A stretch of DNA of 64,000 nucleotides from Lepidodermella squamata (lineage: Eukaryota; Animalia; Gastrotricha). Made by a program: the position numbers and the translations under genes. Below the pieces are notes generated by a model, which saw nothing but the letters and a program-made list of their open reading frames with translations, made no database searches and had not been told where the DNA came from. The stretch is from contig JBLDXI010000001.1 in the NCBI GenBank assembly GCA_047495785.1, positions 1-64,000 on the forward strand, written 5' to 3'. This document shows, piece after piece, positions 12,001-35,614 of this stretch. Position 1 is the stretch's first letter, and each line of letters starts with the position of its first letter.

Positions 12001-14085
12001 GATCGTTAGGTGACGATTTCCAAGGTTGCTTGCTGTTAGGGCGAAGATTTTCCTTGTCCTCTGGCCTGCTTGAGGTGCGCAGGCTTGATGTCGGTAAAAA
12101 GGCTGGTTGGTCCATGCCTTCGCGCTTCGTGCAAGGCTTGCGGGTGCTTGTCGTTCTGCGATCCCTAACCACCTTAGGCTTTGTCGTCGTGCGGCTAGAG
12201 ACAGCCGGGCGAGCCGTAGTTGTAGTGACTGAAAAATATATTCAGATTGGTCAATTACGCCAGTTATGGAAAGGCTAATCCGTGGCAATTACCGATCCTC
12301 TCCTTCGTGCAGCAGCTCAAGCCAACGCGAGAGCGAACGGGCTTCGAGTCGTCCTTCGGTGTAAACCTGATGACAACACTGTCGGCGGTGATAGCGTCGC
12401 GGCCAGTAAACTTGACTGGCAAATCCCTCGGATCGAAGGACTAGATTATACACAAACGGAGTAGCAATGCAATGGAGCGAGAGAATATGACAAACATACC
12501 TTGGACACACTCCTCTTGTCTGCGCGGAAGGTCACATCCACTCGTTCGACGTTTCTCACGTCAGGAAGATCGAAGCTGAGTACTGGGGTTTCTCGGGGCA
12601 GCTCCACAGTAACCTCAGGTTGCTTGTCACGTGGGGATGACTCCCAAGGACGGCGAGCCGAAGGCCTGAGATTTTCGCTCTCCTCCTTGTTGCTCGATAC
12701 TCGGAGACTGTCTTGAGGAATGAATGTGGTGTCATCGAGGCTCGACGATTTGGCGCAGATCTTCTTAGGAGCGGCCGTCGTCTTCGGTGTCTTTGAGGTT
12801 GTGGAAGAGCCACGCTCGCGGGGAACGCGGGGACTGCTAGGCTTTCCGCTCACTCCCGGCTTTGCAGTAGTCACGGTTGTCTTGCGCACAGTAGTAGTCT
12901 TTGGTGCAACCTTGAAGCAACCGAATACAGACAACTGCGCTTGAACAGGTTCCTTGGGATCTTTCTTGTTGAACACGACAGTGATCGAGTCAGCATTAAC
13001 CTCCTTCGGGAACTTGGCCGGCAATTCTGAAGGCTTGTATACCTGAGGAAAAACAAGAAAGAAGTCATGATTTTGCAAACGCTGCTTTGATGCTGATACC
13101 TTAGGCTCCAATACGGGTCTGGTGTAAACAACGACAGATTCGACGTTGGTATATTGCGGCAAATCGAAACCAGCGAGAGGCGTGCGAGCGGGGAATCGAA
13201 TGGTCGTTTCCGGTTTCTTGTCTTCCGGAGAGCTCTTCCATGGCTTCTCAGACTTTGGCCTCAGGTTCTCCTTGTCCTCGGGCCTGCTCGACGTTGTAAT
13301 GGAACTCGAAGGCAAGTAGATGGGTTGTGACATTCCTTCCTTCTTTTCACAAGGCTTCGGCGTGGTTCCAGGAGTAGTTGATCCCTTGGGCGCGTTCGAT
13401 GCTCCAGTTTGAGCTTTCGGGGTTGTCGTTTCTATGATTAGTGACAGCGTCACGTCAAAATTAAATCCACAATATAACGAGTCGATACTTACTTGGCGCC
13501 TCCTTGAAGCAGCCACGAACCGCCAACTTAGCTTCCACAGGCTTGGAGTCATCGATGCGAGTGAAGGTCAGGCCGATGGCATCTGCAACCACGTCGGTCG
13601 GGAAGTTGACGGGAAGCTCCGAAGGCTTGTATTCCTAAGATTGACTACTATTAAGCAAGCCAGTCGAAATAGGTAATCTACCCTCACCTTTTCAACGTTC
13701 TTGTTCGAAGGCGATACAGTCAAGCGGACAGCCTTAACGTTCTTAAGGTCTGGCAGGTCGAAGCCAGCAAGCTCAGAAGGGCGCGGGAATTGTACTCCAA
13801 CGTTGGGCAAGCGATCGTTAGGTGACGATTTCCAAGGTTGCTTGCTGTTAGGGCGAAGATTTTCCTTGTCCTCTGGCCTGCTTGAGGTGCGCAGGCTTGA
13901 TGTCGGTAAAAAGGCTGGTTGGTCCATGCCTTCGCGCTTCGTGCAAGGCTTGCGGGTGCTTGTCGTTCTGCGATCCCTAACCACCTTAGGCTTTGTCGTC
14001 GTGCGGCTAGAGACAGCCGGGCGAGCCGTAGTTGTAGTGACTGAAAAATATATTCAGATTGGTCAATTACGCCAGTTATGGAAAG
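1..14085 (-). repeat. Coding tandem array, 1812-bp unit (7 full copies + ~0.75 at the window edge); 5 exons/5 introns, 506 aa, 3 domains per unit
   Basis: ORF track recurs every 1812 bp. Exons 1004-1356 (353), 809-950 (142), 416-747 (332), 1628-2170 (543), 1421-1568 (148) sum to 1518 nt. GT-AG introns 951-1003 (53), 748-808 (61), 359-415 (57), 1569-1627 (59), 1357-1420 (64) sum to 294 nt. Total is exactly 1812. Confidence 0.95.
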
Positions 14086-17000
14086 ATTCCATCAACTATC
14101 GCTGAGCTTACAAAAGTCCCCGATCGACTTACCGCGCACTTCCTTGAAGCAGCCGCGAACGGCCAACTTGGCTTCAACAGGCTTCTTATCGTCGAGCTTC
14201 GAGAAGGTCAACACAATCGCGTCGGCGAACACTTCGGTCGGGAACTTGAGCGGGAATTCAGACGGCTTGTACTCCTGTAGACAAAAGAACATGGCGATAG
14301 TTTAACGAACTCATCAACGCAAAACCCTCGTGCAAGCCAGATCGGTGTTGCCCATGGCGCAGCACTCCCCCGTGTTTGAAAGCAAATTCTGCCAACACCT
14401 ATACTCACCTTGTCGACGTTCTTATCCGCCGGGGTGGTCGTCAGGCGGACCGATTTCACGTTCGTCAGCTTCGGAAGCTCGACACCAGACAGCTGGGAGC
14501 GCTCAGGAAACTTAACGCCAACCGTCGGGGTGCGGTCGTCGGCGGCAGAGCTCCACGGATCCCGGCTCTTGGGACGCAAGTTCTCCTTCTGCTCTGGCTT
14601 GCTCGATGTTCTGAGGTTGGCCAGTGGAATGAACACAGGGCTGTCCATGCCGTCAGTCTTCTGGCACGGGCGCACAGTTGTTGGTGTGGTCGGGGTACTA
14701 GGCGTGGTCTTGCCAGTTCCAGTCCGGTCGCGCACCACAAGTCTGCGAGTGGTGGTGCCTTTTCCGGGTGTTGTGCTTCCTGTAAACACACAAAAACACA
14801 GATTCCATCAACTATCGCTTACAAAAGTCCCCGATCGAGTTACCGCGCACTTCCTTGAAGCAGCCGCGAACGGCCAACTTGGCTTCAACAGGCTTCTTAT
14901 CGTCGAGCTTCGAGAAGGTCAACACAATCGCGTCGGCGAACACTTCGGTCGGGAACTTGAGCGGGAATTCAGACGGCTTGTACTCCTGTAGACAAAAGAA
15001 CATGGCGATAGTTTAACGAACTCATCAACGCAAAACCCTCGTGCAAGCCAGATCGGTGTTGCCCATGGCGCAGCACTCCCCCGTGTTTGAAAGCAAATTC
15101 TGCCAACACCTATACTCACCTTGTCGACGTTCTTATCCGCCGGGGTGGTCGTCAGGCGGACCGATTTCACGTTCGTCAGCTTCGGAAGCTCGACACCAGA
15201 CAGCTGGGAGCGCTCAGGAAACTTAACGCCAACCGTCGGGGTGCGGTCGTCGGCGGCAGAGCTCCACGGATCCCGGCTCTTGGGACGCAAGTTCTCCTTC
15301 TGCTCTGGCTTGCTCGATGTTCTGAGGTTGGCCAGTGGAATGAACACAGGGCTGTCCATGCCGTCAGTCTTCTGGCACGGGCGCACAGTTGTTGGTGTGG
15401 TCGGGGTACTAGGCGTGGTCTTGCCAGTTCCAGTCCGGTCGCGCACCACAAGTCTGCGAGTGGTGGTGCCTTTTCCGGGTGTTGTGCTTCCTGTAAACAC
15501 ACAAAAACACAGATTCCATCAACTATCGCTGAGCCTACAAAAGTCCCCGATCGACTTACCGCGCACTTCCTTGAAGCAGCCGCGAACGGCCAACTTGGCT
15601 TCAACAGGCTTCTTATCGTCGAGCTTCGAGAAGGTCAACACAATCGCGTCGGCGAACACTTCGGTCGGGAACTTGAGCGGGAATTCAGACGGCTTGTACT
15701 CCTGTAGACAAAAGAACATGGCGATAGTTTAACGAACTCATCAACGCAAAACCCTCGTGCAAGCCAGATCGGTGTTGCCCATGGCGCAGCACTCCCCCGT
15801 GTTTGAAAGCAAATTCTGCCAACACCTATACTCACCTTGTCGACGTTCTTATCCGCCGGGGTGGTCGTCAGGCGGACCGATTTCACGTTCGTCAGCTTCG
15901 GAAGCTCGACACCAGACAGCTGGGAGCGCTCAGGAAACTTAACGCCAACCGTCGGGGTGCGGTCGTCGGCGGCAGAGCTCCACGGATCCCGGCTCTTGGG
16001 ACGCAAGTTCTCCTTCTGCTCTGGCTTGCTCGATGTTCTGAGGTTGGCCAGTGGAATGAACACAGGGCTGTCCATGCCGTCAGTCTTCTGGCACGGGCGC
16101 ACAGTTGTTGGTGTGGTCGGGGTACTAGGCGTGGTCTTGCCAGTTCCAGTCCGGTCGCGCACCACAAGTCTGCGAGTGGTGGTGCCTTTTCCGGGTGTTG
16201 TGCTTCCTGTAAACACACAAAAACACAGATTCCATCAACTATCGCTGAGCCTACAAAAGTCCCCGATCGACTTACCGCGCACTTCCTTGAAGCAGCCGCG
16301 AACGGCCAACTTGGCTTCAACAGGCTTCTTATCGTCGAGCTTCGAGAAGGTCAACACAATCGCGTCGGCGAACACTTCGGTCGGGAACTTGAGCGGGAAT
16401 TCAGACGGCTTGTACTCCTGTAGACAAAAGAACATGGCGATAGTTTAACGAACTCATCAACGCAAAACCCTCGTGCAAGCCAGATCGGTGTTGCCCATGG
16501 CGCAGCACTCCCCCGTGTTTGAAAGCAAATTCTGCCAACACCTATACTCACCTTGTCGACGTTCTTATCCGCCGGGGTGGTCGTCAGGCGGACCGATTTC
16601 ACGTTCGTCAGCTTCGGAAGCTCGACACCAGACAGCTGGGAGCGCTCAGGAAACTTAACGCCAACCGTCGGGGTGCGGTCGTCGGCGGCAGAGCTCCACG
16701 GATCCCGGCTCTTGGGACGCAAGTTCTCCTTCTGCTCTGGCTTGCTCGATGTTCTGAGGTTGGCCAGTGGAATGAACACAGGGCTGTCCATGCCGTCAGT
16801 CTTCTGGCACGGGCGCACAGTTGTTGGTGTGGTCGGGGTACTAGGCGTGGTCTTGCCAGTTCCAGTCCGGTCGCGCACCACAAGTCTGCGAGTGGTGGTG
16901 CCTTTTCCGGGTGTTGTGCTTCCTGTAAACACACAAAAACACAGATTCCATCAACTATCGCTGAGCCTACAAAAGTCCCCGATCGAGTTACCGCGCACTT

Positions 17001-20000
17001 CCTTGAAGCAGCCGCGAACGGCCAACTTGGCTTCAACAGGCTTCTTATCGTCGAGCTTCGAGAAGGTCAACACAATCGCGTCGGCGAACACTTCGGTCGG
17101 GAACTTGAGCGGGAATTCAGACGGCTTGTACTCCTGTAGACAAAAGAACATGGCGATAGTTTAACGAACTCATCAACGCAAAACCCTCGTGCAAGCCAGA
17201 TCGGTGTTGCCCATGGCGCAGCACTCCCCCGTGTTTGAAAGCAAATTCTGCCAACACCTATACTCACCTTGTCGACGTTCTTATCCGCCGGGGTGGTCGT
17301 CAGGCGGACCGATTTCACGTTCGTCAGCTTCGGAAGCTCGACACCAGACAGCTGGGAGCGCTCAGGAAACTTAACGCCAACCGTCGGGGTGCGGTCGTCG
17401 GCGGCAGAGCTCCACGGATCCCGGCTCTTGGGACGCAAGTTCTCCTTCTGCTCTGGCTTGCTCGATGTTCTGAGGTTGGCCAGTGGAATGAACACAGGGC
17501 TGTCCATGCCGTCAGTCTTCTGGCACGGGCGCACAGTTGTTGGTGTGGTCGGGGTACTAGGCGTGGTCTTGCCAGTTCCAGTCCGGTCGCGCACCACAAG
17601 TCTGCGAGTGGTGGTGCCTTTTCCGGGTGTTGTGCTTCCTGTAAACACACAAAAACACAGATTCCATCAACTATCGCTGAGCCTACAAAAGTCCCCGATC
17701 GACTTACCGCGCACTTCCTTGAAGCAGCCGCGAACGGCCAACTTGGCTTCAACAGGCTTCTTATCGTCGAGCTTCGAGAAGGTCAACACAATCGCGTCGG
17801 CGAACACTTCGGTCGGGAACTTGAGCGGGAATTCAGACGGCTTGTACTCCTGTAGACAAAAGAACATGGCGATAGTTTAACGAACTCATCAACGCAAAAC
17901 CCTCGTGCAAGCCAGATCGGTGTTGCCCATGGCGCAGCACTCCCCCGTGTTTGAAAGCAAATTCTGCCAACACCTATACTCACCTTGTCGACGTTCTTAT
18001 CCGCCGGGGTGGTCGTCAGGCGGACCGATTTCACGTTCGTCAGCTTCGGAAGCTCGACACCAGACAGCTGGGAGCGCTCAGGAAACTTAACGCCAACCGT
18101 CGGGGTGCGGTCGTCGGCGGCAGAGCTCCACGGATCCCGGCTCTTGGGACGCAAGTTCTCCTTCTGCTCTGGCTTGCTCGATGTTCTGAGGTTGGCCAGT
18201 GGAATGAACACAGGGCTGTCCATGCCGTCAGTCTTCTGGCACGGGCGCACAGTTGTTGGTGTGGTCGGGGTACTAGGCGTGGTCTTGCCAGTTCCAGTCC
18301 GGTCGCGCACCACAAGTCTGCGAGTGGTGGTGCCTTTTCCGGGTGTTGTGCTTCCTGTAAACACACAAAAACACAGATTCCATCAACTATCGCTGAGCCT
18401 ACAAAAGTCCCCGATCGACTTACCGCGCACTTCCTTGAAGCAGCCGCGAACGGCCAACTTGGCTTCAACAGGCTTCTTATCGTCGAGCTTCGAGAAGGTC
18501 AACACAATCGCGTCGGCGAACACTTCGGTCGGGAACTTGAGCGGGAATTCAGACGGCTTGTACTCCTGTAGACAAAAGAACATGGCGATAGTTTAACGAA
18601 CTCATCAACGCAAAACCCTCGTGCAAGCCAGATCGGTGTTGCCCATGGCGCAGCACTCCCCCGTGTTTGAAAGCAAATTCTGCCAACACCTATACTCACC
18701 TTGTCGACGTTCTTATCCGCCGGGGTGGTCGTCAGGCGGACCGATTTCACGTTCGTCAGCTTCGGAAGCTCGACACCAGACAGTTGGGAGCGCTCAGGAA
18801 ACTTAACGCCAACCGTCGGGGTGCGGTCGTCGGCGGCAGAGCTCCACGGATCCCGGCTCTTGGGACGCAAGTTCTCCTTCTGCTCTGGCTTGCTCGATGT
18901 TCTGAGGTTGGCCAGTGGAATGAACACAGGGCTGTCCATGCCGTCAGTCTTCTGGCACGGGCGCACAGTTGTTGGTGTGGTCGGGGTACTAGGCGTGGTC
19001 TTGCCAGTTCCAGTCCGGTCGCGCACCACAAGTCTGCGAGTGGTGGTGCCTTTTCCGGGTGTTGTGCTTCCTGTAAACACACAAAAACACAGATTCCATC
19101 AACTATCGCTGAGCCTACAAAAGTCCCCGATCGACTTACCGCGCACTTCCTTGAAGCAGCCGCGAACGGCCAACTTGGCTTCAACAGGCTTCTTATCGTC
19201 GAGCTTCGAGAAGGTCAACACAATCGCGTCGGCGAACACTTCGGTCGGGAACTTGAGCGGGAATTCAGACGGCTTGTACTCCTGTAGACAAAAGAACATG
19301 GCGATAGTTTAACGAACTCATCAACGCAAAACCCTCGTGCAAGCCAGATCGGTGTTGCCCATGGCGCAGCACTCCCCCGTGTTTGAAAGCAAATTCTGCC
19401 AACACCTATACTCACCTTGTCGACGTTCTTATCCGCCGGGGTGGTCGTCAGGCGGACCGATTTCACGTTCGTCAGCTTCGGAAGCTCGACACCAGACAGT
19501 TGGGAGCGCTCAGGAAACTTAACGCCAACCGTCGGGGTGCGGTCGTCGGCGGCAGAGCTCCACGGATCCCGGCTCTTGGGACGCAAGTTCTCCTTCTGCT
19601 CTGGCTTGCTCGATGTTCTGAGGTTGGCCAGTGGAATGAACACAGGGCTGTCCATGCCGTCAGTCTTCTGGCACGGGCGCACAGTTGTTGGTGTGGTCGG
19701 GGTACTAGGCGTGGTCTTGCCAGTTCCAGTCCGGTCGCGCACCACAAGTCTGCGAGTGGTGGTGCCTTTTCCGGGTGTTGTGCTTCCTGTAAACACACAA
19801 AAACACAGATTCCATCAACTATCGCTGAGCCTACAAAAGTCCCCGATCGACTTACCGCGCACTTCCTTGAAGCAGCCGCGAACGGCCAACTTGGCTTCAA
19901 CAGGCTTCTTATCGTCGAGCTTCGAGAAGGTCAACACAATCGCGTCGGCGAACACTTCGGTCGGGAACTTGAGCGGGAATTCAGACGGCTTGTACTCCTG

Positions 20001-23000
20001 TAGACAAAAGAACATGGCGATAGTTTAACGAACTCATCAACGCAAAACCCTCGTGCAAGCCAGATCGGTGTTGCCCATGGCGCAGCACTCCCCCGTGTTT
20101 GAAAGCAAATTCTGCCAACACCTATACTCACCTTGTCGACGTTCTTATCCGCCGGGGTGGTCGTCAGGCGGACCGATTTCACGTTCGTCAGCTTCGGAAG
20201 CTCGACACCAGACAGCTGGGAGCGCTCAGGAAACTTAACGCCAACCGTCGGGGTGCGGTCGTCGGCGGCAGAGCTCCACGGATCCCGGCTCTTGGGACGC
20301 AAGTTCTCCTTCTGCTCTGGCTTGCTCGATGTTCTGAGGTTGGCCAGTGGAATGAACACAGGGCTGTCCATGCCGTCAGTCTTCTGGCACGGGCGCACAG
20401 TTGTTGGTGTGGTCGGGGTACTAGGCGTGGTCTTGCCAGTTCCAGTCCGGTCGCGCACCACAAGTCTGCGAGTGGTGGTGCCTTTTCCGGGTGTTGTGCT
20501 TCCTGTAAACACACAAAAACACAGATTCCATCAACTATCGCTGAGCCTACAAAAGTCCCCGATCGACTTACCGCGCACTTCCTTGAAGCAGCCGCGAACG
20601 GCCAACTTGGCTTCAACAGGCTTCTTATCGTCGAGCTTCGAGAAGGTCAACACAATCGCGTCGGCGAACACTTCGGTCGGGAACTTGAGCGGGAATTCAG
20701 ACGGCTTGTACTCCTGTAGACAAAAGAACATGGCGATAGTTTAACGAACTCATCAACGCAAAACCCTCGTGCAAGCCAGATCGGTGTTGCCCATGGCGCA
20801 GCACTCCCCCGTGTTTGAAAGCAAATTCTGCCAACACCTATACTCACCTTGTCGACGTTCTTATCCGCCGGGGTGGTCGTCAGGCGGACCGATTTCACGT
20901 TCGTCAGCTTCGGAAGCTCGACACCAGACAGCTGGGAGCGCTCAGGAAACTTAACGCCAACCGTCGGGGTGCGGTCGTCGGCGGCAGAGCTCCACGGATC
21001 CCGGCTCTTGGGACGCAAGTTCTCCTTCTGCTCTGGCTTGCTCGATGTTCTGAGGTTGGCCAGTGGAATGAACACAGGGCTGTCCATGCCGTCAGTCTTC
21101 TGGCACGGGCGCACAGTTGTTGGTGTGGTCGGGGTACTAGGCGTGGTCTTGCCAGTTCCAGTCCGGTCGCGCACCACAAGTCTGCGAGTGGTGGTGCCTT
21201 TTCCGGGTGTTGTGCTTCCTGTAAACACACAAAAACACAGATTCCATCAACTATCGCTGAGCCTACAAAAGTCCCCGATCGACTTACCGCGCACTTCCTT
21301 GAAGCAGCCGCGAACGGCCAACTTGGCTTCAACAGGCTTCTTATCGTCGAGCTTCGAGAAGGTCAACACAATCGCGTCGGCGAACACTTCGGTCGGGAAC
21401 TTGAGCGGGAATTCAGACGGCTTGTACTCCTGTAGACAAAAGAACATGGCGATAGTTTAACGAACTCATCAACGCAAAACCCTCGTGCAAGCCAGATCGG
21501 TGTTGCCCATGGCGCAGCACTCCCCCGTGTTTGAAAGCAAATTCTGCCAACACCTATACTCACCTTGTCGACGTTCTTATCCGCCGGGGTGGTCGTCAGG
21601 CGGACCGATTTCACGTTCGTCAGCTTCGGAAGCTCGACACCAGACAGCTGGGAGCGCTCAGGAAACTTAACGCCAACCGTCGGGGTGCGGTCGTCGGCGG
21701 CAGAGCTCCACGGATCCCGGCTCTTGGGACGCAAGTTCTCCTTCTGCTCTGGCTTGCTCGATGTTCTGAGGTTGGCCAGTGGAATGAACACAGGGCTGTC
21801 CATGCCGTCAGTCTTCTGGCACGGGCGCACAGTTGTTGGTGTGGTCGGGGTACTAGGCGTGGTCTTGCCAGTTCCAGTCCGGTCGCGCACCACAAGTCTG
21901 CGAGTGGTGGTGCCTTTTCCGGGTGTTGTGCTTCCTGTAAACACACAAAAACACAGATTCCATCAACTATCGCTGAGCCTACAAAAGTCCCCGATCGACT
22001 TACCGCGCACTTCCTTGAAGCAGCCGCGAACGGCCAACTTGGCTTCAACAGGCTTCTTATCGTCGAGCTTCGAGAAGGTCAACACAATCGCGTCGGCGAA
22101 CACTTCGGTCGGGAACTTGAGCGGGAATTCAGACGGCTTGTACTCCTGTAGACAAAAGAACATGGCGATAGTTTAACGAACTCATCAACGCAAAACCCTC
22201 GTGCAAGCCAGATCGGTGTTGCCCATGGCGCAGCACTCCCCCGTGTTTGAAAGCAAATTCTGCCAACACCTATACTCACCTTGTCGACGTTCTTATCCGC
22301 CGGGGTGGTCGTCAGGCGGACCGATTTCACGTTCGTCAGCTTCGGAAGCTCGACACCAGACAGCTGGGAGCGCTCAGGAAACTTAACGCCAACCGTCGGG
22401 GTGCGGTCGTCGGCGGCAGAGCTCCACGGATCCCGGCTCTTGGGACGCAAGTTCTCCTTCTGCTCTGGCTTGCTCGATGTTCTGAGGTTGGCCAGTGGAA
22501 TGAACACAGGGCTGTCCATGCCGTCAGTCTTCTGGCACGGGCGCACAGTTGTTGGTGTGGTCGGGGTACTAGGCGTGGTCTTGCCAGTTCCAGTCCGGTC
22601 GCGCACCACAAGTCTGCGAGTGGTGGTGCCTTTTCCGGGTGTTGTGCTTCCTGTAAACACACAAAAACACAGATTCCATCAACTATCGCTGAGCCTACAA
22701 AAGTCCCCGATCGACTTACCGCGCACTTCCTTGAAGCAGCCGCGAACGGCCAACTTGGCTTCAACAGGCTTCTTATCGTCGAGCTTCGAGAAGGTCAACA
22801 CAATCGCGTCGGCGAACACTTCGGTCGGGAACTTGAGCGGGAATTCAGACGGCTTGTACTCCTGTAGACAAAAGAACATGGCGATAGTTTAACGAACTCA
22901 TCAACGCAAAACCCTCGTGCAAGCCAGATCGGTGTTGCCCATGGCGCAGCACTCCCCCGTGTTTGAAAGCAAATTCTGCCAACACCTATACTCACCTTGT

Positions 23001-26000
23001 CGACGTTCTTATCCGCCGGGGTGGTCGTCAGGCGGACCGATTTCACGTTCGTCAGCTTCGGAAGCTCGACACCAGACAGCTGGGAGCGCTCAGGAAACTT
23101 AACGCCAACCGTCGGGGTGCGGTCGTCGGCGGCAGAGCTCCACGGATCCCGGCTCTTGGGACGCAAGTTCTCCTTCTGCTCTGGCTTGCTCGATGTTCTG
23201 AGGTTGGCCAGTGGAATGAACACAGGGCTGTCCATGCCGTCAGTCTTCTGGCACGGGCGCACAGTTGTTGGTGTGGTCGGGGTACTAGGCGTGGTCTTGC
23301 CAGTTCCAGTCCGGTCGCGCACCACAAGTCTGCGAGTGGTGGTGCCTTTTCCGGGTGTTGTGCTTCCTGTAAACACACAAAAACACAGATTCCATCAACT
23401 ATCGCTGAGCCTACAAAAGTCCCCGATCGACTTACCGCGCACTTCCTTGAAGCAGCCGCGAACGGCCAACTTGGCTTCAACAGGCTTCTTATCGTCGAGC
23501 TTCGAGAAGGTCAACACAATCGCGTCGGCGAACACTTCGGTCGGGAACTTGAGCGGGAATTCAGACGGCTTGTACTCCTGTAGACAAAAGAACATGGCGA
23601 TAGTTTAACGAACTCATCAACGCAAAACCCTCGTGCAAGCCAGATCGGTGTTGCCCATGGCGCAGCACTCCCCCGTGTTTGAAAGCAAATTCTGCCAACA
23701 CCTATACTCACCTTGTCGACGTTCTTATCCGCCGGGGTGGTCGTCAGGCGGACCGATTTCACGTTCGTCAGCTTCGGAAGCTCGACACCAGACAGTTGGG
23801 AGCGCTCAGGAAACTTAACGCCAACCGTCGGGGTGCGGTCGTCGGCGGCAGAGCTCCACGGATCCCGGCTCTTGGGACGCAAGTTCTCCTTCTGCTCTGG
23901 CTTGCTCGATGTTCTGAGGTTGGCCAGTGGAATGAACACAGGGCTGTCCATGCCGTCAGTCTTCTGGCACGGGCGCACAGTTGTTGGTGTGGTCGGGGTA
24001 CTAGGCGTGGTCTTGCCAGTTCCAGTCCGGTCGCGCACCACAAGTCTGCGAGTGGTGGTGCCTTTTCCGGGTGTTGTGCTTCCTGTAAACACACAAAAAC
24101 ACAGATTCCATCAACTATCGCTGAGCCTACAAAAGTCCCCGATCGACTTACCGCGCACTTCCTTGAAGCAGCCGCGAACGGCCAACTTGGCTTCAACAGG
24201 CTTCTTATCGTCGAGCTTCGAGAAGGTCAACACAATCGCGTCGGCGAACACTTCGGTCGGGAACTTGAGCGGGAATTCAGACGGCTTGTACTCCTGTAGA
24301 CAAAAGAACATGGCGATAGTTTAACGAACTCATCAACGCAAAACCCTCGTGCAAGCCAGATCGGTGTTGCCCATGGCGCAGCACTCCCCCGTGTTTGAAA
24401 GCAAATTCTGCCAACACCTATACTCACCTTGTCGACGTTCTTATCCGCCGGGGTGGTCGTCAGGCGGACCGATTTCACGTTCGTCAGCTTCGGAAGCTCG
24501 ACACCAGACAGCTGGGAGCGCTCAGGAAACTTAACGCCAACCGTCGGGGTGCGGTCGTCGGCGGCAGAGCTCCACGGATCCCGGCTCTTGGGACGCAAGT
24601 TCTCCTTCTGCTCTGGCTTGCTCGATGTTCTGAGGTTGGCCAGTGGAATGAACACAGGGCTGTCCATGCCGTCAGTCTTCTGGCACGGGCGCACAGTTGT
24701 TGGTGTGGTCGGGGTACTAGGCGTGGTCTTGCCAGTTCCAGTCCGGTCGCGCACCACAAGTCTGCGAGTGGTGGTGCCTTTTCCGGGTGTTGTGCTTCCT
24801 GTAAACACACAAAAACACAGATTCCATCAACTATCGCTGAGCCTACAAAAGTCCCCGATCGACTTACCGCGCACTTCCTTGAAGCAGCCGCGAACGGCCA
24901 ACTTGGCTTCAACAGGCTTCTTATCGTCGAGCTTCGAGAAGGTCAACACAATCGCGTCGGCGAACACTTCGGTCGGGAACTTGAGCGGGAATTCAGACGG
25001 CTTGTACTCCTGTAGACAAAAGAACATGGCGATAGTTTAACGAACTCATCAACGCAAAACCCTCGTGCAAGCCAGATCGGTGTTGCCCATGGCGCAGCAC
25101 TCCCCCGTGTTTGAAAGCAAATTCTGCCAACACCTATACTCACCTTGTCGACGTTCTTATCCGCCGGGGTGGTCGTCAGGCGGACCGATTTCACGTTCGT
25201 CAGCTTCGGAAGCTCGACACCAGACAGCTGGGAGCGCTCAGGAAACTTAACGCCAACCGTCGGGGTGCGGTCGTCGGCGGCAGAGCTCCACGGATCCCGG
25301 CTCTTGGGACGCAAGTTCTCCTTCTGCTCTGGCTTGCTCGATGTTCTGAGGTTGGCCAGTGGAATGAACACAGGGCTGTCCATGCCGTCAGTCTTCTGGC
25401 ACGGGCGCACAGTTGTTGGTGTGGTCGGGGTACTAGGCGTGGTCTTGCCAGTTCCAGTCCGGTCGCGCACCACAAGTCTGCGAGTGGTGGTGCCTTTTCC
25501 GGGTGTTGTGCTTCCTGTAAACACACAAAAACACAGATTCCATCAACTATCGCTGAGCCTACAAAAGTCCCCGATCGACTTACCGCGCACTTCCTTGAAG
25601 CAGCCGCGAACGGCCAACTTGGCTTCAACAGGCTTCTTATCGTCGAGCTTCGAGAAGGTCAACACAATCGCGTCGGCGAACACTTCGGTCGGGAACTTGA
25701 GCGGGAATTCAGACGGCTTGTACTCCTGTAGACAAAAGAACATGGCGATAGTTTAACGAACTCATCAACGCAAAACCCTCGTGCAAGCCAGATCGGTGTT
25801 GCCCATGGCGCAGCACTCCCCCGTGTTTGAAAGCAAATTCTGCCAACACCTATACTCACCTTGTCGACGTTCTTATCCGCCGGGGTGGTCGTCAGGCGGA
25901 CCGATTTCACGTTCGTCAGCTTCGGAAGCTCGACACCAGACAGCTGGGAGCGCTCAGGAAACTTAACGCCAACCGTCGGGGTGCGGTCGTCGGCGGCAGA

Positions 26001-29000
26001 GCTCCACGGATCCCGGCTCTTGGGACGCAAGTTCTCCTTCTGCTCTGGCTTGCTCGATGTTCTGAGGTTGGCCAGTGGAATGAACACAGGGCTGTCCATG
26101 CCGTCAGTCTTCTGGCACGGGCGCACAGTTGTTGGTGTGGTCGGGGTACTAGGCGTGGTCTTGCCAGTTCCAGTCCGGTCGCGCACCACAAGTCTGCGAG
26201 TGGTGGTGCCTTTTCCGGGTGTTGTGCTTCCTGTAAACACACAAAAACACAGATTCCATCAACTATCGCTGAGCCTACAAAAGTCCCCGATCGACTTACC
26301 GCGCACTTCCTTGAAGCAGCCGCGAACGGCCAACTTGGCTTCAACAGGCTTCTTATCGTCGAGCTTCGAGAAGGTCAACACAATCGCGTCGGCGAACACT
26401 TCGGTCGGGAACTTGAGCGGGAATTCAGACGGCTTGTACTCCTGTAGACAAAAGAACATGGCGATAGTTTAACGAACTCATCAACGCAAAACCCTCGTGC
26501 AAGCCAGATCGGTGTTGCCCATGGCGCAGCACTCCCCCGTGTTTGAAAGCAAATTCTGCCAACACCTATACTCACCTTGTCGACGTTCTTATCCGCCGGG
26601 GTGGTCGTCAGGCGGACCGATTTCACGTTCGTCAGCTTCGGAAGCTCGACACCAGACAGCTGGGAGCGCTCAGGAAACTTAACGCCAACCGTCGGGGTGC
26701 GGTCGTCGGCGGCAGAGCTCCACGGATCCCGGCTCTTGGGACGCAAGTTCTCCTTCTGCTCTGGCTTGCTCGATGTTCTGAGGTTGGCCAGTGGAATGAA
26801 CACAGGGCTGTCCATGCCGTCAGTCTTCTGGCACGGGCGCACAGTTGTTGGTGTGGTCGGGGTACTAGGCGTGGTCTTGCCAGTTCCAGTCCGGTCGCGC
26901 ACCACAAGTCTGCGAGTGGTGGTGCCTTTTCCGGGTGTTGTGCTTCCTGTAAACACACAAAAACACAGATTCCATCAACTATCGCTGAGCCTACAAAAGT
27001 CCCCGATCGACTTACCGCGCACTTCCTTGAAGCAGCCGCGAACGGCCAACTTGGCTTCAACAGGCTTCTTATCGTCGAGCTTCGAGAAGGTCAACACAAT
27101 CGCGTCGGCGAACACTTCGGTCGGGAACTTGAGCGGGAATTCAGACGGCTTGTACTCCTGTAGACAAAAGAACATGGCGATAGTTTAACGAACTCATCAA
27201 CGCAAAACCCTCGTGCAAGCCAGATCGGTGTTGCCCATGGCGCAGCACTCCCCCGTGTTTGAAAGCAAATTCTGCCAACACCTATACTCACCTTGTCGAC
27301 GTTCTTATCCGCCGGGGTGGTCGTCAGGCGGACCGATTTCACGTTCGTCAGCTTCGGAAGCTCGACACCAGACAGCTGGGAGCGCTCAGGAAACTTAACG
27401 CCAACCGTCGGGGTGCGGTCGTCGGCGGCAGAGCTCCACGGATCCCGGCTCTTGGGACGCAAGTTCTCCTTCTGCTCTGGCTTGCTCGATGTTCTGAGGT
27501 TGGCCAGTGGAATGAACACAGGGCTGTCCATGCCGTCAGTCTTCTGGCACGGGCGCACAGTTGTTGGTGTGGTCGGGGTACTAGGCGTGGTCTTGCCAGT
27601 TCCAGTCCGGTCGCGCACCACAAGTCTGCGAGTGGTGGTGCCTTTTCCGGGTGTTGTGCTTCCTGTAAACACACAAAAACACAGATTCCATCAACTATCG
27701 CTGAGCCTACAAAAGTCCCCGATCGACTTACCGCGCACTTCCTTGAAGCAGCCGCGAACGGCCAACTTGGCTTCAACAGGCTTCTTATCGTCGAGCTTCG
27801 AGAAGGTCAACACAATCGCGTCGGCGAACACTTCGGTCGGGAACTTGAGCGGGAATTCAGACGGCTTGTACTCCTGTAGACAAAAGAACATGGCGATAGT
27901 TTAACGAACTCATCAACGCAAAACCCTCGTGCAAGCCAGATCGGTGTTGCCCATGGCGCAGCACTCCCCCGTGTTTGAAAGCAAATTCTGCCAACACCTA
28001 TACTCACCTTGTCGACGTTCTTATCCGCCGGGGTGGTCGTCAGGCGGACCGATTTCACGTTCGTCAGCTTCGGAAGCTCGACACCAGACAGCTGGGAGCG
28101 CTCAGGAAACTTAACGCCAACCGTCGGGGTGCGGTCGTCGGCGGCAGAGCTCCACGGATCCCGGCTCTTGGGACGCAAGTTCTCCTTCTGCTCTGGCTTG
28201 CTCGATGTTCTGAGGTTGGCCAGTGGAATGAACACAGGGCTGTCCATGCCGTCAGTCTTCTGGCACGGGCGCACAGTTGTTGGTGTGGTCGGGGTACTAG
28301 GCGTGGTCTTGCCAGTTCCAGTCCGGTCGCGCACCACAAGTCTGCGAGTGGTGGTGCCTTTTCCGGGTGTTGTGCTTCCTGTAAACACACAAAAACACAG
28401 ATTCCATCAACTATCGCTGAGCCTACAAAAGTCCCCGATCGACTTACCGCGCACTTCCTTGAAGCAGCCGCGAACGGCCAACTTGGCTTCAACAGGCTTC
28501 TTATCGTCGAGCTTCGAGAAGGTCAACACAATCGCGTCGGCGAACACTTCGGTCGGGAACTTGAGCGGGAATTCAGACGGCTTGTACTCCTGTAGACAAA
28601 AGAACATGGCGATAGTTTAACGAACTCATCAACGCAAAACCCTCGTGCAAGCCAGATCGGTGTTGCCCATGGCGCAGCACTCCCCCGTGTTTGAAAGCAA
28701 ATTCTGCCAACACCTATACTCACCTTGTCGACGTTCTTATCCGCCGGGGTGGTCGTCAGGCGGACCGATTTCACGTTCGTCAGCTTCGGAAGCTCGACAC
28801 CAGACAGTTGGGAGCGCTCAGGAAACTTAACGCCAACCGTCGGGGTGCGGTCGTCGGCGGCAGAGCTCCACGGATCCCGGCTCTTGGGACGCAAGTTCTC
28901 CTTCTGCTCTGGCTTGCTCGATGTTCTGAGGTTGGCCAGTGGAATGAACACAGGGCTGTCCATGCCGTCAGTCTTCTGGCACGGGCGCACAGTTGTTGGT

Positions 29001-32000
29001 GTGGTCGGGGTACTAGGCGTGGTCTTGCCAGTTCCAGTCCGGTCGCGCACCACAAGTCTGCGAGTGGTGGTGCCTTTTCCGGGTGTTGTGCTTCCTGTAA
29101 ACACACAAAAACACAGATTCCATCAACTATCGCTGAGCCTACAAAAGTCCCCGATCGACTTACCGCGCACTTCCTTGAAGCAGCCGCGAACGGCCAACTT
29201 GGCTTCAACAGGCTTCTTATCGTCGAGCTTCGAGAAGGTCAACACAATCGCGTCGGCGAACACTTCGGTCGGGAACTTGAGCGGGAATTCAGACGGCTTG
29301 TACTCCTGTAGACAAAAGAACATGGCGATAGTTTAACGAACTCATCAACGCAAAACCCTCGTGCAAGCCAGATCGGTGTTGCCCATGGCGCAGCACTCCC
29401 CCGTGTTTGAAAGCAAATTCTGCCAACACCTATACTCACCTTGTCGACGTTCTTATCCGCCGGGGTGGTCGTCAGGCGGACCGATTTCACGTTCGTCAGC
29501 TTCGGAAGCTCGACACCAGACAGCTGGGAGCGCTCAGGAAACTTAACGCCAACCGTCGGGGTGCGGTCGTCGGCGGCAGAGCTCCACGGATCCCGGCTCT
29601 TGGGACGCAAGTTCTCCTTCTGCTCTGGCTTGCTCGATGTTCTGAGGTTGGCCAGTGGAATGAACACAGGGCTGTCCATGCCGTCAGTCTTCTGGCACGG
29701 GCGCACAGTTGTTGGTGTGGTCGGGGTACTAGGCGTGGTCTTGCCAGTTCCAGTCCGGTCGCGCACCACAAGTCTGCGAGTGGTGGTGCCTTTTCCGGGT
29801 GTTGTGCTTCCTGTAAACACACAAAAACACAGATTCCATCAACTATCGCTGAGCCTACAAAAGTCCCCGATCGACTTACCGCGCACTTCCTTGAAGCAGC
29901 CGCGAACGGCCAACTTGGCTTCAACAGGCTTCTTATCGTCGAGCTTCGAGAAGGTCAACACAATCGCGTCGGCGAACACTTCGGTCGGGAACTTGAGCGG
30001 GAATTCAGACGGCTTGTACTCCTGTAGACAAAAGAACATGGCGATAGTTTAACGAACTCATCAACGCAAAACCCTCGTGCAAGCCAGATCGGTGTTGCCC
30101 ATGGCGCAGCACTCCCCCGTGTTTGAAAGCAAATTCTGCCAACACCTATACTCACCTTGTCGACGTTCTTATCCGCCGGGGTGGTCGTCAGGCGGACCGA
30201 TTTCACGTTCGTCAGCTTCGGAAGCTCGACACCAGACAGTTGGGAGCGCTCAGGAAACTTAACGCCAACCGTCGGGGTGCGGTCGTCGGCGGCAGAGCTC
30301 CACGGATCCCGGCTCTTGGGACGCAAGTTCTCCTTCTGCTCTGGCTTGCTCGATGTTCTGAGGTTGGCCAGTGGAATGAACACAGGGCTGTCCATGCCGT
30401 CAGTCTTCTGGCACGGGCGCACAGTTGTTGGTGTGGCGGCTGTCCCATTTTCTGAAATTGACACTCAATCTTCACTATCGTCAGGTTTTTTTGCTGAAAC
30501 AAACGGTTGGGTTTTGTGCTTGTTGTCGATCCTTTGTGTCAATGCATTTGTTTTAATTGATGATAGAAGGAATTTTAACCTGAAATACCTTGCTTTGTTG
30601 TAGTGCCGTTCACAGTCCTTGATTGGGACTTCAGGACTGTTCGACGTGTACCTTATTTTTAACTTTTGATCAGAAAGATTTTGGATTGTTCGGTGTGGTT
30701 ACCTGGCTTTTGTGTAGTTGTGACGTTGGCATTCCGTACCTGGGATTTTAGAACAGATCGCCTCGTATCTTCATGTTACAACAATATGATATCCGCATCT
30801 CATTTGACAAGGTTTGCAACTTACTCGTGGATTGTGATGACATCGTAGATCCTATATCGTACCGGTTTATCAGAATTTGTTGATGAATTCAGTTCAGGAA
30901 ACATACCTGGTCTGGCAGTTGTTGTGACATTTCTTCCTTGAGATTTAAGAAGCATTCGCCTGCTATTCGCTATATTTATAGACCCTTTTAGTAGGGACCA
31001 TTGATGAGTAACCGAAATTTACGTGTGGTTGGGTTGCTTGTTGTACCTCCTATCATGATAACGCACCATAAGTGTCATTCTCTCATTGCATAAAAGCATC
31101 TCACACAAACCTGGCATGGCAAGCGTTTGACTCTTCAGCACGAATTTTCGCGGGGCTGAGAATAACATCAATTCATGCGAATTTACTATTGAGCACATTT
31201 ATTTATCACCTGCATCGAGGTCCAGCATAAAATTTAGTAACCCATCTTCCGGAATCGAGCAGTTGATGATCGGATTTGAAGCTGAATTTGCAAGAAAAAT
31301 TGAATTGCTTATAAAACTTCAATTGCTCAATCATACCAGCTGATCGGACTACAGTCGCGGGTGTTGATGGTTGGAGGAATGATTCGCTCATAGCGCAAGT
31401 TTGAATGTTGCAAGCTTCCACTTGAATTTGCGCTGTAACAGGTTTGCTGGCATCTTGCTTTGTGAATTCCACTTTGATGGCATCGAAGCAGTAACCATTG
31501 AATGATGCAGTCGCCGTAGGAGGGTAGACTGAAGGTTGCGCCGCTCCAGTGGCTTTCAGCGGCTCCCAGGGTGTATTTACCGTTTTTCGAGAGGAGATCG
31601 AGAAAGAGCGGATGTTTCCGGAAAGTGTTGTTAGGCTTACCTGTATATTATTTAAGTGAGACTCTAACTGTCCATGAAAATGGCCTAAAACTAACATTGC
31701 CCAATCTGACTCGTTCCTTGAAATAAAGCTCGATGAAAGGCAAGCTTTCTGGTCCATTTGATATCCAGGCCTGGCGACTGTTAACCAAGGCTTTCGCACT
31801 GTCGCCAGCATTGCTGCTCACACGAACGGAGCTGGTGCCACTCAAAAACGGATTGATCGGCTGCAAACTAGAGCACATCAAGTTGAGGCTGCTCTGGACG
31901 ATTTGGGTTGCTTAATAAAATCATATCATTTATAACATAAACATCATCCTTTGTTGACTTACAGGTGACATAAATAAGCTGAGTGATGACCTTTGACTCG

Positions 32001-35000
32001 GCTCTTCCTATAGACGGAGTTGTACCTGGTCCAGCACACTTCGCTGATAAGCAACCAGTTAGCTCGATCTGAAAGTTCGCTGCTTTTGATTCGTCTGCTT
32101 TTCGGAGAACAATTTTGATTGAGCTGACACAGTAGGCGGGAGGAAAATCCGGTAGGCGCCACATTTCTAACATTTGCTAATAGTTTATGGTTATGGATTA
32201 GATGGATTCACTGGTATATTCCTTATTTGTTAACCTGTTCCGTTCCGAATTGTGGTCCTGGGCTTACAAAATCGGATGTCGGGGAAGTTTTGATTTGTAA
32301 AAAGAAGCCACGAATGTTATCCTGAGATACGAAATGCAGGGAATTCGCTTGCACAGGCATATTCAAATCGATGATGACAAATGGATTCTTGTCGCCAGCA
32401 GCAATTTGCCATGGGTTGTTCTTAGAGCTAGCAAAAACGTTGGCTTTTTGATCAGGGTTGCTGGAAACTTGAACGCCTTTGACATATTGCGCGATTGTCG
32501 CCGCGTTTGACAGTAAATTTTCCCGGCTGTCACAATACAACGGATTCTTCAGTCCCATTCTCTCTGAAGTTTCAAATATAGCAAAAAATGACAGAGTAGG
32601 GTAATGGACTTACGGCCACAAGCTTGGATCTTCAACGCTGCTGTGATCGGCGCGTTCTTGTTAACTTTGGCGAATTTAACGAGCACGGTCGTTCCCATGG
32701 TGTTGGGTGAGAAAACGATGCGGCTTGAAACCTTGGATGCTGGTGCTACCATCTGTGAGGCGGTAGGGATAAATGAGCCATTTGTGTGATATCCGATTGT
32801 TACGTTTACTTACCTTCATGTCTTTGCTGGCCCAATTATCAGGGTCAATTCCAACCCAAGCGCCGCTGTTTTCTACCATGATTCCCCAGGTCGCGACATT
32901 GTCCCAATTCGTAAGGACAATGTCCCCAAGGTAGTAGCTAGCTGGCAAACGCATATTTACCCAAGGATCAGAATCCTCCGCGGATGAAGTCCACTTTCCA
33001 CCAAGAAACGCTCTAATGCCGTCTTTTCCCTGGCTGTTCGATGAAACGGAGAGATCCGCGTCATTCAGCAAACCGTTAGGAGCCAATGCATCGCTGTATA
33101 TGTTGCAGGGCATTTCCACGGGTCGCCTCGCCCTGTTACCCAGCAAGCCGCCTTCTTCGTCAGGAATATAAGGTTTGAAGTTACGAATAGTTCGATCTTT
33201 TTCGTTCAGTAACAATGGGCTCCGACCAGGACTATCGCAAGCTTGGATGGAAACTTGAGCTCCAGCCGGTTTGCTTTGGTCAGTTTTTATCAGGGCAATA
33301 GTCAACCCGTACATGTGTATTCCCAGCGGCAAAATTGCCGGGCCATTTTGAACCTGCAATCATAGATTACTTAGTTAGAGAAGTAATGGTTGAAATTTTA
33401 CATACGGCCATCACGAAAGTGTTAGTCTTAGCATCAAATGGGATGGCTTGAACCGAACCCGTTTGGTAAAGCCACAGGTAGTAGCCTTTGACATTGACAG
33501 TATTTTTCAAGCTTATTTGGCCGACTTCGAAAATCGCGGGGAATTGAAGAGAAATCGTAGGTTTCTTATCATCTGCAGTGGATGACCAAGGCTCTTTTGA
33601 GGTCACTCGGATAAAATCACGTTGCGCCTCATTGCTGGTAACAGTGATGTTCTCGAGCGCAACAAGGTTCGGAATGAACAGCAGATCGTAATAGTTTTTA
33701 CATTGCTGAATATTCCATTTACCAGCTGTGAAATTAATGCATAAATAAAAATTCGATTAATTTAATCCCAAAAATCTTACGCTCTTGGGGTTTAAGCATC
33801 ATTTTCTTCCATTTCGTGTCATTTGATCTCAAGATATTTGTTACAACGACGTTACGTGGCATGCAAACCGAAACTTCCAGCTTCGTAGCAGCGGCAGCTC
33901 CTTTCGTCGTCTTGGTAAGTTTTATCGCTAGTTTTTGCGCCAAGGGAGTAGTCTTGGAGAAGTCTGCTATGGACGAAGTATCCTAGAGAAAATTAGGATT
34001 CGTCATTTTGCATATGCCTTCGGGCTCAAAGGTTATTACGGTTGTTGCCGAAGCCGTTCCGTTGGGTCCTGAAACTTCCACTTGGGCACGCGAAAAGCCG
34101 GAGTTTTCCAGCAATGCTACGCGGTACAGTCGAGCATTCGGATGGTTGATCGTTACCGTCAGTTTCGGCTCGTCGTCTTGGACTGTCGATTGCCACTTGC
34201 CCGGAGCACCTGTTTGAGAAAACTATATTCAGTCGAATCGAGAAAGCAAAAAAACGAATGCCTTTTCGCTATCCTTGTATAACTATAAACCGCGAGAATG
34301 ATCATATTTGATCGCTAGCTAACTTCACCCACAATACGACAGCAACTTGGAGAAACTTGGTGACTGAATTCAAACCTTTCCGAAGAGCGCCATGCAAGCT
34401 TGGGTTGCTAGACAGGTCACTTATGGCCGCTTCGATTTTACTGTCAACAGCTAGGACATCGTAAGGAATGCAGTTCATCGGCGGCGTAACGTTAGGAAAT
34501 GGTGCGGCAGCAGCAGGGATGACATTTGTTGCCTGATTTCCAGTCGGTGGAGCCGAAGCCTTGCAAAGTTCCTGGCGGACAGCCGAAGTGTTGGTCAGAG
34601 CAGCATTGATCTTATCCACTAGACTTCCCTTGATTTTCATCACAGAAGCTGGACATGGCTTATCTTGAAATGGCGGCACTTAAAAAATAGATGAAGAAAA
34701 TTATATGAACGGGAGAGCTCCAATATTGCCTTCAAGTTGGAAACTCACAGTAAGCTGCTATTGTCTTGCAGTCACCGAATTGACAGCCGGTTATTTCAAG
34801 CTGAACTTGTGCCGAAGCTGTCGGCGAAGTTTTCACGAAGGTGATGTTTACTTTGTTCAAGCAATATCTTTGGTCGAATGTTATCATCACACCCGCCGTC
34901 TAAAGGTATTTTCTTGAGCATTTGTGGGAATTATTGAGAGGCTTCTTACCCTGAGAGGTTTGACTTCTTTGGATACTCCAGTAACGCTTCCAGTAACATC

Positions 35001-35614
35001 GAATTTGGTAACAGATTTTGGGAAAAACAGCCTAATTTGGTACAGCCTGAACGAAGACCCCTTTGGAAACTCCAGAGAAACCCAAGGGCTTAAATCGAGA
35101 AAATCACTCAGTAAATTGAATTTCAAGTTTTTAGCGACGCTTTTACTTGACATCAGTTGCTAACGATTGCCAGCCAGACTGTGCGGTAGGCGTTTGACCC
35201 GGAATCACCAGAACTTGCTTCGCTGTTTTCCCGGGAGCGTTGCTGCTGGTCTTTACATCAATCGTATCGACTATCGCTTTTGTGAAGCTCAACGGGGTAC
35301 AGGTTTGACTGATGTTCAAAGCGTGATACCACCATTTCTTTATGTCTGTATAGCGGATGAATAATAGACATCGAAAATTAACTGAATTAGACGAAAATTA
35401 ACCCTCCGAAGTCTCGAGGACCTCTTGCTTCAAAGCAGCATTCCCTTTACAAACCACCAAATCCTCAGTTGTACTGTGAGCGAAGAAGAAAGATCAGTGT
35501 TAATCGCCAAAGTAAACAATAAAGTGCTTGCCTTGTCAACCGAACGCTTGATGCGACGATAAACAACGTAACAAAGAGAAACGACGGCTGATTTCGAAAT
35601 TTAAACGTAATCAT
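1..35614 (-). CDS. Giant multi-exon secreted repeat protein (>9,000 aa in window, 3' end outside window): >50 tandem Cys-bounded F5/8C/discoidin-like domains separated by Thr/Pro/Lys/Arg-rich linkers; candidate mucin-like/adhesive protein
   Basis: ATG at 35614 gives MITFKFRNQPSFLFVTLFIVASSVRLT (signal-peptide-like). Hand splicing keeps an open frame through the first exons, the micro-exon cassette and both arrays; not every junction in 31337-35100 was traced. Recurrent motif C-x-GM-x-(F/Y)(I/L)P-x-TSS-x-ENLRP-x-PW-x-D-x-P-x-FP...NV...YKPSE-x-P-x-FP-x-V-x-AD...PV-x-A-x-L-x-V-x-GC. Fold and function are inferred. Confidence 0.85.
14086..30436 (-). repeat. Coding tandem array, 716-bp unit (23 domain copies); 2 exons/2 introns, 171 aa per unit
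   Basis: Representative unit: exon 15836-16206 (371), intron 15702-15835 (134), exon 15560-15701 (142), intron 15491-15559 (69), summing to 716. The 142-nt exon occurs 23 times. One unit is 711 bp (5-bp intronic deletion near 14820). Confidence 0.95.
30505..31281 (-). other. Cassette of 8 phase-1/phase-1 micro-exons of the giant gene (72, 45, 27, 63, 27, 66, 63, 27 nt in transcript order)
   Basis: Exons 31210-31281, 31111-31155, 31023-31049, 30907-30969, 30825-30851, 30703-30768, 30589-30651, 30505-30531. Each is flanked by AG/GT, is a multiple of 3 and is stop-free; intervening introns are 51-61 nt. Confidence 0.8.
31337..35614 (-). other. Unique N-terminal part of the giant gene: signal peptide plus about 6 divergent copies of the same domain
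   Basis: Exonic segments share the (V/T)SSN...W-x-S-x3-D-x2-P-x-(V/I) and C-terminal L-x-I-x-(A/G)C motifs, e.g. VTSNEAQRDFIRVTSKEPWSSTADDKKPTISLQFP, VSSNSQGKDGIRAFLGGKWTSSAEDSDPWVNMRLP, VSSNPDQKANVFASSKNNPWQIAAGDKNPFVIIDL. Confidence 0.8.

Follow-up and report, generated by a model that had tools for sequence, protein, structure and literature searches.

A giant gene on the minus strand of the window that we analysed (64,000 nt of the Lepidodermella squamata genome) carries a cassette of eight small exons (E1 to E8) between a unique head and a body of tandem discoidin-like repeats. This arrangement raises the question of whether the cassette is a splicing switch or whether it builds a piece of the protein with a function of its own. 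The initial annotation placed the exons at a hinge between the head and the body, a position that our gene model from the ATG at 35614 bears out, and read them as a cassette similar to those in the micro-exon genes (MEGs) of schistosomes, tunable by skipping in up to 2^8 in-frame combinations. The arithmetic of this proposal is sound, as all 256 subsets of the exons are free of stop codons. The comparisons described below suggest that the hinge is more likely a cutting place of the protein than a splicing switch.

Starting at the ATG at 35614, the frame stays open across the cassette and continues into the repeat body. The gene model comprises 15 head exons, the cassette, the first module of the body, 22 A units and eight B-unit starts, arranged as follows:

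35541..35614, minus strand: first coding exon, with the ATG at 35614 and a hydrophobic, signal-peptide-like N-terminus (judged by eye from the translation).
31337..35473, minus strand: head exons 2-15, encoding several divergent discoidin/F5-8 type C-like domains; the head measures 1,123 aa including exon 1.
14128..30451, minus strand: repeat body A, with the first module (30451-29880) and then 22 near-identical units of 716 nt.
1..14040, minus strand: repeat body B, with units of 1,812 nt (8 starts) and three discoidin-like modules in each, running off the window edge.

The protein extends over approximately 9,200 aa within the window, which is a lower bound because the gene continues past the window edge. 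We detected no stop codons in the head, the cassette or the translated unit types, and no membrane anchor in the part of the protein that lies inside the window. Each A unit encodes one basic, Thr-rich linker and one discoidin-like module, and the body introns are in phase 1 between modules and in phase 0 within them. The modules appear to be discoidin/F5-8 type C-like. The Pfam match to the head is weak and below the cut-off (PF22633, E 0.0085), and the Atlas features for both head and body indicate a discoidin-like fold, with a top cluster composed mostly of Rotifera. In agreement with these features, Foldseek matched a structure model of the orthologue described below to neuropilin (b1b2), factor V/VIII (C domains) and CBM32 at an E of ~1e-5, a likeness of fold at only ~12% identity. 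Both this low-confidence model (pLDDT 52) and alignment A1, in which some window exons are misplaced, serve as a hint of the fold only. The homology searches were run exon by exon rather than with the joined protein, and the cassette exons (9-24 codons) were mostly below the minimum length of the tools. A word-based search returned no match to the head exon or to the repeat exon used as queries, and the searches yielded no named homologue of the modules. The literature search returned no description of this protein family.

The repeat units are strikingly uniform. Across 20 consecutive copies the A units (14128-29810) differ by 0-1 nt, introns included, and the B units (1-14040) repeat at exactly 1,812 nt. 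Such uniformity could mean that the units expanded very recently or are strongly homogenised, or it could be an effect of the assembly on copy number. Two introns also stand out by their size. A head intron at 34210-34375 is 166 nt long, compared to 50-70 nt for the other head introns, and the orthologue has no intron there; it may contain a hidden small exon or have a misplaced boundary. A fairly GC-rich phase-0 intron of 134 nt, over double the usual length, is found at 30022-30155 in the first module and again in each A unit. The gene immediately upstream of the giant gene encodes a lamin-tail domain (PF00932, E 1.5e-7; 36363-37752, minus strand) and is also present in the orthologous contig.

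The cassette occupies the stretch between the last head exon and the first module of the body and is composed of the following exons:

31281-31210, minus strand: E1, 72 nt, phase 1-1; conserved final piece of the head, which carries the only Cys of the hinge.
31155-31111, minus strand: E2, 45 nt, phase 1-1; RKFVLKSQ, positional homologue of SRFLLMDQ in the orthologue.
31049-31023, minus strand: E3, 27 nt, phase 1-1; Thr/Ser spacer exon.
30969-30907, minus strand: E4, 63 nt, phase 1-1; RRMLLKSQ and an NVT sequon.
30851-30825, minus strand: E5, 27 nt, phase 1-1; Thr/Ser spacer exon.
30768-30703, minus strand: E6, 66 nt, phase 1-1; RRSVLKSQ (RSVL is the S1P site of SREBP2) and an NVT sequon.
30651-30589, minus strand: E7, 63 nt, phase 1-1; RRTVLKSQ and an NGT sequon.
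30531-30505, minus strand: E8, 27 nt, phase 1-1; Thr/Ser spacer exon.

All eight exons are preceded by AG and followed by GT, and the nine cassette introns (51-61 nt) have a GC content of 0.27-0.38, compared to 0.44-0.56 in the exons. We scored the possible parses with splice matrices trained on a set of 21 introns from elsewhere in the gene. The chain of exons proposed in the initial annotation ranked first among the 808 stop-free chains from the donor at 31336 to the acceptor at 30452. Its score (86.4) was well above the best obtained from 500 dinucleotide shuffles (44.1), 450 of which gave no chain at all. The runner-up (85.4) extends E7 by 9 nt, in frame, to a donor after 30580. Furthermore, the joined translation of the top chain is a 130-aa hinge identical to the peptide originally proposed. 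The eight in-frame, phase 1-1 exons are a real feature, located where they had been placed. Some details of their description need adjustment. The alternation of 27-nt and longer exons is imperfect, with a break between E6 and E7, and E1 fits neither class; three of the eight exons are shorter than 45 nt and the other five measure 45-72 nt. The proposed RRxxLKSQ motif has the double arginine in E4, E6 and E7, but E2 carries RK instead (RKFVLKSQ). Similarly, the three sequons reported (NVT, NVT and NGT) are there, but E1 has a fourth (NCS). Ser and Thr make up 35% of the hinge after E1.

The cassette grew by exon duplication, as had been proposed. E4, E6 and E7 are paralogous at the DNA level (z 3-9), E2 resembles E4 (z 3.5) and E3 resembles E8 (z 3.3). 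The same DNA comparison found no similarity left among the cassette introns, and a direct search for DNA repeats in the cassette returned the pair of E4 and E6 as the only meaningful one. The persistence of exon similarity next to introns that share nothing suggests that the duplications are old. In 24 pairwise comparisons, the L-K-S-Q codons had 17 synonymous and 0 non-synonymous differences, with a switch between AGT and TCN codons for serine. This codon pattern indicates translation of the LKSQ motif and selection on it. Only a symmetric exon can be duplicated without breaking the reading frame and, thus, a uniform phase would be expected whether or not the exons are skipped. Furthermore, all introns between modules of the body are themselves in phase 1.

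We identified an orthologue (P0002), encoded on the marine metagenome contigs L001-L004, with an exhaustive profile search that used the exon before the cassette. The other four of the five matches of this search (P0001 and P0003-P0005) were unrelated repeat proteins, and a search with P0006 recovered only P0002. The single match of a metagenome scan (L005) was a chance peptide match on a bacterial-looking contig. The orthologue is syntenic with the focal gene: kinase, aconitase, HSP20 and lamin-tail genes precede the giant gene in both. The heads align with 36% identity over 892 aa, and 17 of 17 cysteines are aligned. Each of the five introns in the aligned part of the orthologue coincides in position and phase with a focal intron. 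In the same part (window 34678-31210 versus L002:8175-11199), the focal gene has 11 introns, a difference that points to either marked gain in the focal gene or loss in the orthologue. Gene order in the neighbourhood is kept over ~25 kb (window 36000-63500 versus L007), and within the compared part of the relative's contig nothing corresponds to the MYND and tectonin/propeller-like genes at 47-54 kb.

The orthologue sets E1 apart from the rest of the cassette. The counterpart of E1 is exact (72 nt, with both phase-1 introns), with a score of 53 versus 32 or less in 5,000 shuffles. Its cysteine is conserved and raises the number of cysteines in the head from 21 to 22. This suggests that E1 closes a disulfide bond of the head and is not optional; E1 is probably part of the head. 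After E1, the orthologue has a single open exon spanning 314 nt or more (L001:6796-7109) where the focal gene has E2-E8. This exon encodes SRFLLMDQ opposite the RKFVLKSQ of E2, followed by three or more copies of a 25-residue RRRLA unit in which 73 of 75 nt are identical. As all of the orthologue contigs end inside the hinge, this layout holds for the sequenced part and later exons are possible; the metagenome look-ups returned no orthologue contig that reaches past the hinge. The two hinges share the motif and its position right after the head and differ in exon layout, in sequons and in charge (pI 5.8 in the acidic hinge of the orthologue, 12.0 in the basic focal hinge). From these sequences, the motif appears to have multiplied separately in the two lineages, by exon duplication in the focal gene and by a recent in-exon repeat of 75 nt in the orthologue. 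The acidic 25-residue repeat of the orthologue could release short Trp-containing peptides if it were cut at every RRLA.

What the two hinges have in common matches the recognition site of site-1 protease (SKI-1/S1P). This enzyme cuts after R-X-(L/I/V)-Z, where Z is preferably Leu or Lys, and reportedly requires Arg at P4; its site in SREBP2 is RSVL (PMC12067269). RRLA is also a documented S1P site (PMC8310232). Testing for R-X-(L/I/V)-Z with X other than Pro or Cys, we found three strict matches in the focal hinge (RMLL, RSVL and RTVL) against a shuffle mean of 0.20, with a p of 0.0007 that overstates the significance because the motif was chosen after seeing the data and its copies are duplicates. 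E2 falls outside the consensus, with Lys at P4. The hinge of the orthologue has RFLL and three copies of RRLA, a cross-species comparison that rests on one other species. The head and the body units (1,943 aa) contain no strict match, an absence that is not significant because the motif is rare in any case (P 0.21; background of 0.0008 per residue). The invariant K-S-Q after the site lies outside the P4-P1 consensus, and the orthologue has M-D-Q or D-E-S instead. The signal-like N-terminus (again, as judged by eye) and the low-complexity linker around the sites would fit a secretory-pathway protein with exposed sites. S1P is broadly distributed in animals and is assumed on that basis to be present in this organism. 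Many of its substrates are membrane-tethered, which counts against the S1P reading, as the part of the focal protein inside the window shows no anchor.

We give about an even chance to the reading that the duplicated exons are constitutive and build a multi-site cleavage hinge of the S1P type, which would release the head. The giant chain would enter the secretory pathway with a disulfide-bonded head that is completed by E1. E2-E8, derived from a motif exon and a short Thr/Ser spacer exon that were duplicated in tandem long ago, would form a hinge that is flexible, glycosylated and equipped with R-x-(L/V)-L sites, three of them full and one degenerate. Golgi S1P, or a protease of like specificity, could then cut after the Leu and free the head of about 1,150 residues from the giant repeat body, in the manner of the pro-piece of a polymer-forming glycoprotein. 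Having several sites may make cutting reliable among the glycans.

Much of the composition of the hinge would also suit a mucin-type spacer that is never cut, with constitutive exons and a motif that serves as a binding or self-assembly element or is a leftover of duplication. The high content of Ser and Thr after E1 and the four sequons fit such a spacer, as do the body linkers, which are likewise basic and Thr-rich. Furthermore, L-K-S-Q is invariant beyond what S1P would need. We nevertheless regard an uncut spacer as unlikely, since the unit of the orthologue, different and acidic as it is, still centres on Arg-x-Leu-(Leu/Ala), which is not expected of a plain spacer.

Cleavage by another class of enzyme is harder to accept. 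Convertases of the PC1/PC2/furin type could cut at the dibasic Arg-Arg or Arg-Lys pairs and possibly also release short repeated peptides, and all four motif exons have RR or RK, as the repeat of the orthologue has RRR. However, neither hinge contains R-X-(K/R)-R or R-X-X-R, and we rejected furin cleavage on the absence of these motifs in both species. The first site of the orthologue has a single Arg (SRFLL), and dibasic pairs are common all over the body. A basic run followed immediately by Leu, as RRRLA has it, is also disfavoured by enzymes of this type. Together, these observations make a dibasic convertase quite unlikely.

The skipping of the exons in many combinations, as in MEGs, would tune both the length of the hinge and the number of cutting sites. 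The exons are short and symmetric, every subset of them is open, and three acceptors, those of E3, E5 and E7, are weak (0.3, -0.7 and 1.3). Moreover, single skips would need introns of 137-181 nt, and the gene already has introns of 134 and 166 nt. Across eukaryotes, however, skipped exons tend to have longer flanking introns and weak splice sites (PMC6142364). The cassette shows neither tendency: its introns are at the short end of the range of the gene (median of 58 nt), and its donor and acceptor scores are no different from those of the other introns (p 1.0 and 0.44, respectively). Duplication already accounts for the symmetry of the exons, E1 is conserved and its cysteine is probably in a disulfide bond, and the orthologue encodes what is sequenced of its remaining hinge in one exon. 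The cassette also represents a small share of the gene, ~1.4% of the coding sequence (130 of the ~9,200 aa within the window). It is thus distinctly improbable that combinatorial skipping is the purpose of the cassette. Judged from the DNA, the cassette exons look like ordinary and mostly constitutive exons of an intron-rich gene, and low-level skipping of them is quite possible. A mixed scheme, in which each site of an S1P array is here carried by one symmetric exon and regulated skipping sets 0-3 strict sites and hence head release, is very improbable. Finally, it is barely credible that the exons are stretches that merely happen to be open within a single intron of 885 nt, for although a direct splice from 31337 to 30451 would keep the frame, the parse far exceeds the shuffle maximum, the motif is under codon-level selection and E1 is conserved with both of its introns.

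Comparisons with known systems also set the focal gene apart from MEGs. Like the MEGs of Schistosoma mansoni, it has a run of short symmetric exons (8/8 in phase 1-1) and a signal peptide, the latter judged by eye. In schistosome MEGs, which encode small proteins, micro-exons account for up to 75% of the coding sequence and skipping is proven; the gene SmVAL6 joins ordinary exons to a run of micro-exons as the focal gene does (PMC4015677). By contrast, the focal cassette is a minor part of a giant protein, five of its eight exons are 45-72 nt long, its introns are 51-61 nt, and its skipping is hypothetical. Searches with the flanking exons found no sequence relationship to MEGs. With so small a share of its coding sequence in micro-exons, the focal gene is not a MEG.

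In its layout, the protein resembles von Willebrand factor and the gel-forming mucins, which have a large Cys-rich N-terminal piece, a processing site and a long, repetitive and glycosylated body. Its Cys-rich head, putative processing site and repetitive body follow the same order. Those proteins use VWD domains and furin sites, whereas the focal protein has discoidin/F5-8 type C-like modules and a hinge free of furin sites. The substrates of S1P (MBTPS1) include SREBP2 (RSVL), LCMV GP-C (RRLA), the C-site of S1P itself (RRLL), GNPTAB and FAM20C (PMC12067269, PMC8310232, PMC12419022). The focal protein shares with them the R-X-(L/V)-Z motif in a predicted secretory-pathway protein, and two of the motifs are identical, letter for letter, to known sites. 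It differs in having three to four putative sites spread over the linker of a giant repeat protein, expanded separately in two lineages. The type I pectin methylesterases of plants provide an analogy only, from unrelated proteins of another kingdom: subtilases cut RRLL or RKLL sites in their pro-region (PMC13477033), and this subtilase-type motif is also in a linker between an N-terminal region and the mature secreted part.

The feature at this locus is therefore real, and the splicing purpose proposed for it is probably mistaken. Here, duplicated phase-1 linker exons encode what is probably a hinge processed at several sites, in a giant protein of discoidin-like repeats not described before. 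For annotation, the locus is a caution that small symmetric exons in a row, in a genome with short introns, should not by themselves be taken as evidence for splicing variation of the MEG kind. The targets for which S1P is chiefly known are transcription factors bound to membranes, viral glycoproteins and a few enzymes of the Golgi. If the cleavage reading is true, S1P would also mature a giant matrix or mucus protein of an invertebrate via a multi-site hinge, and this hinge would have been enlarged independently in two lineages, by exon duplication in one and by in-exon repeats in the other.
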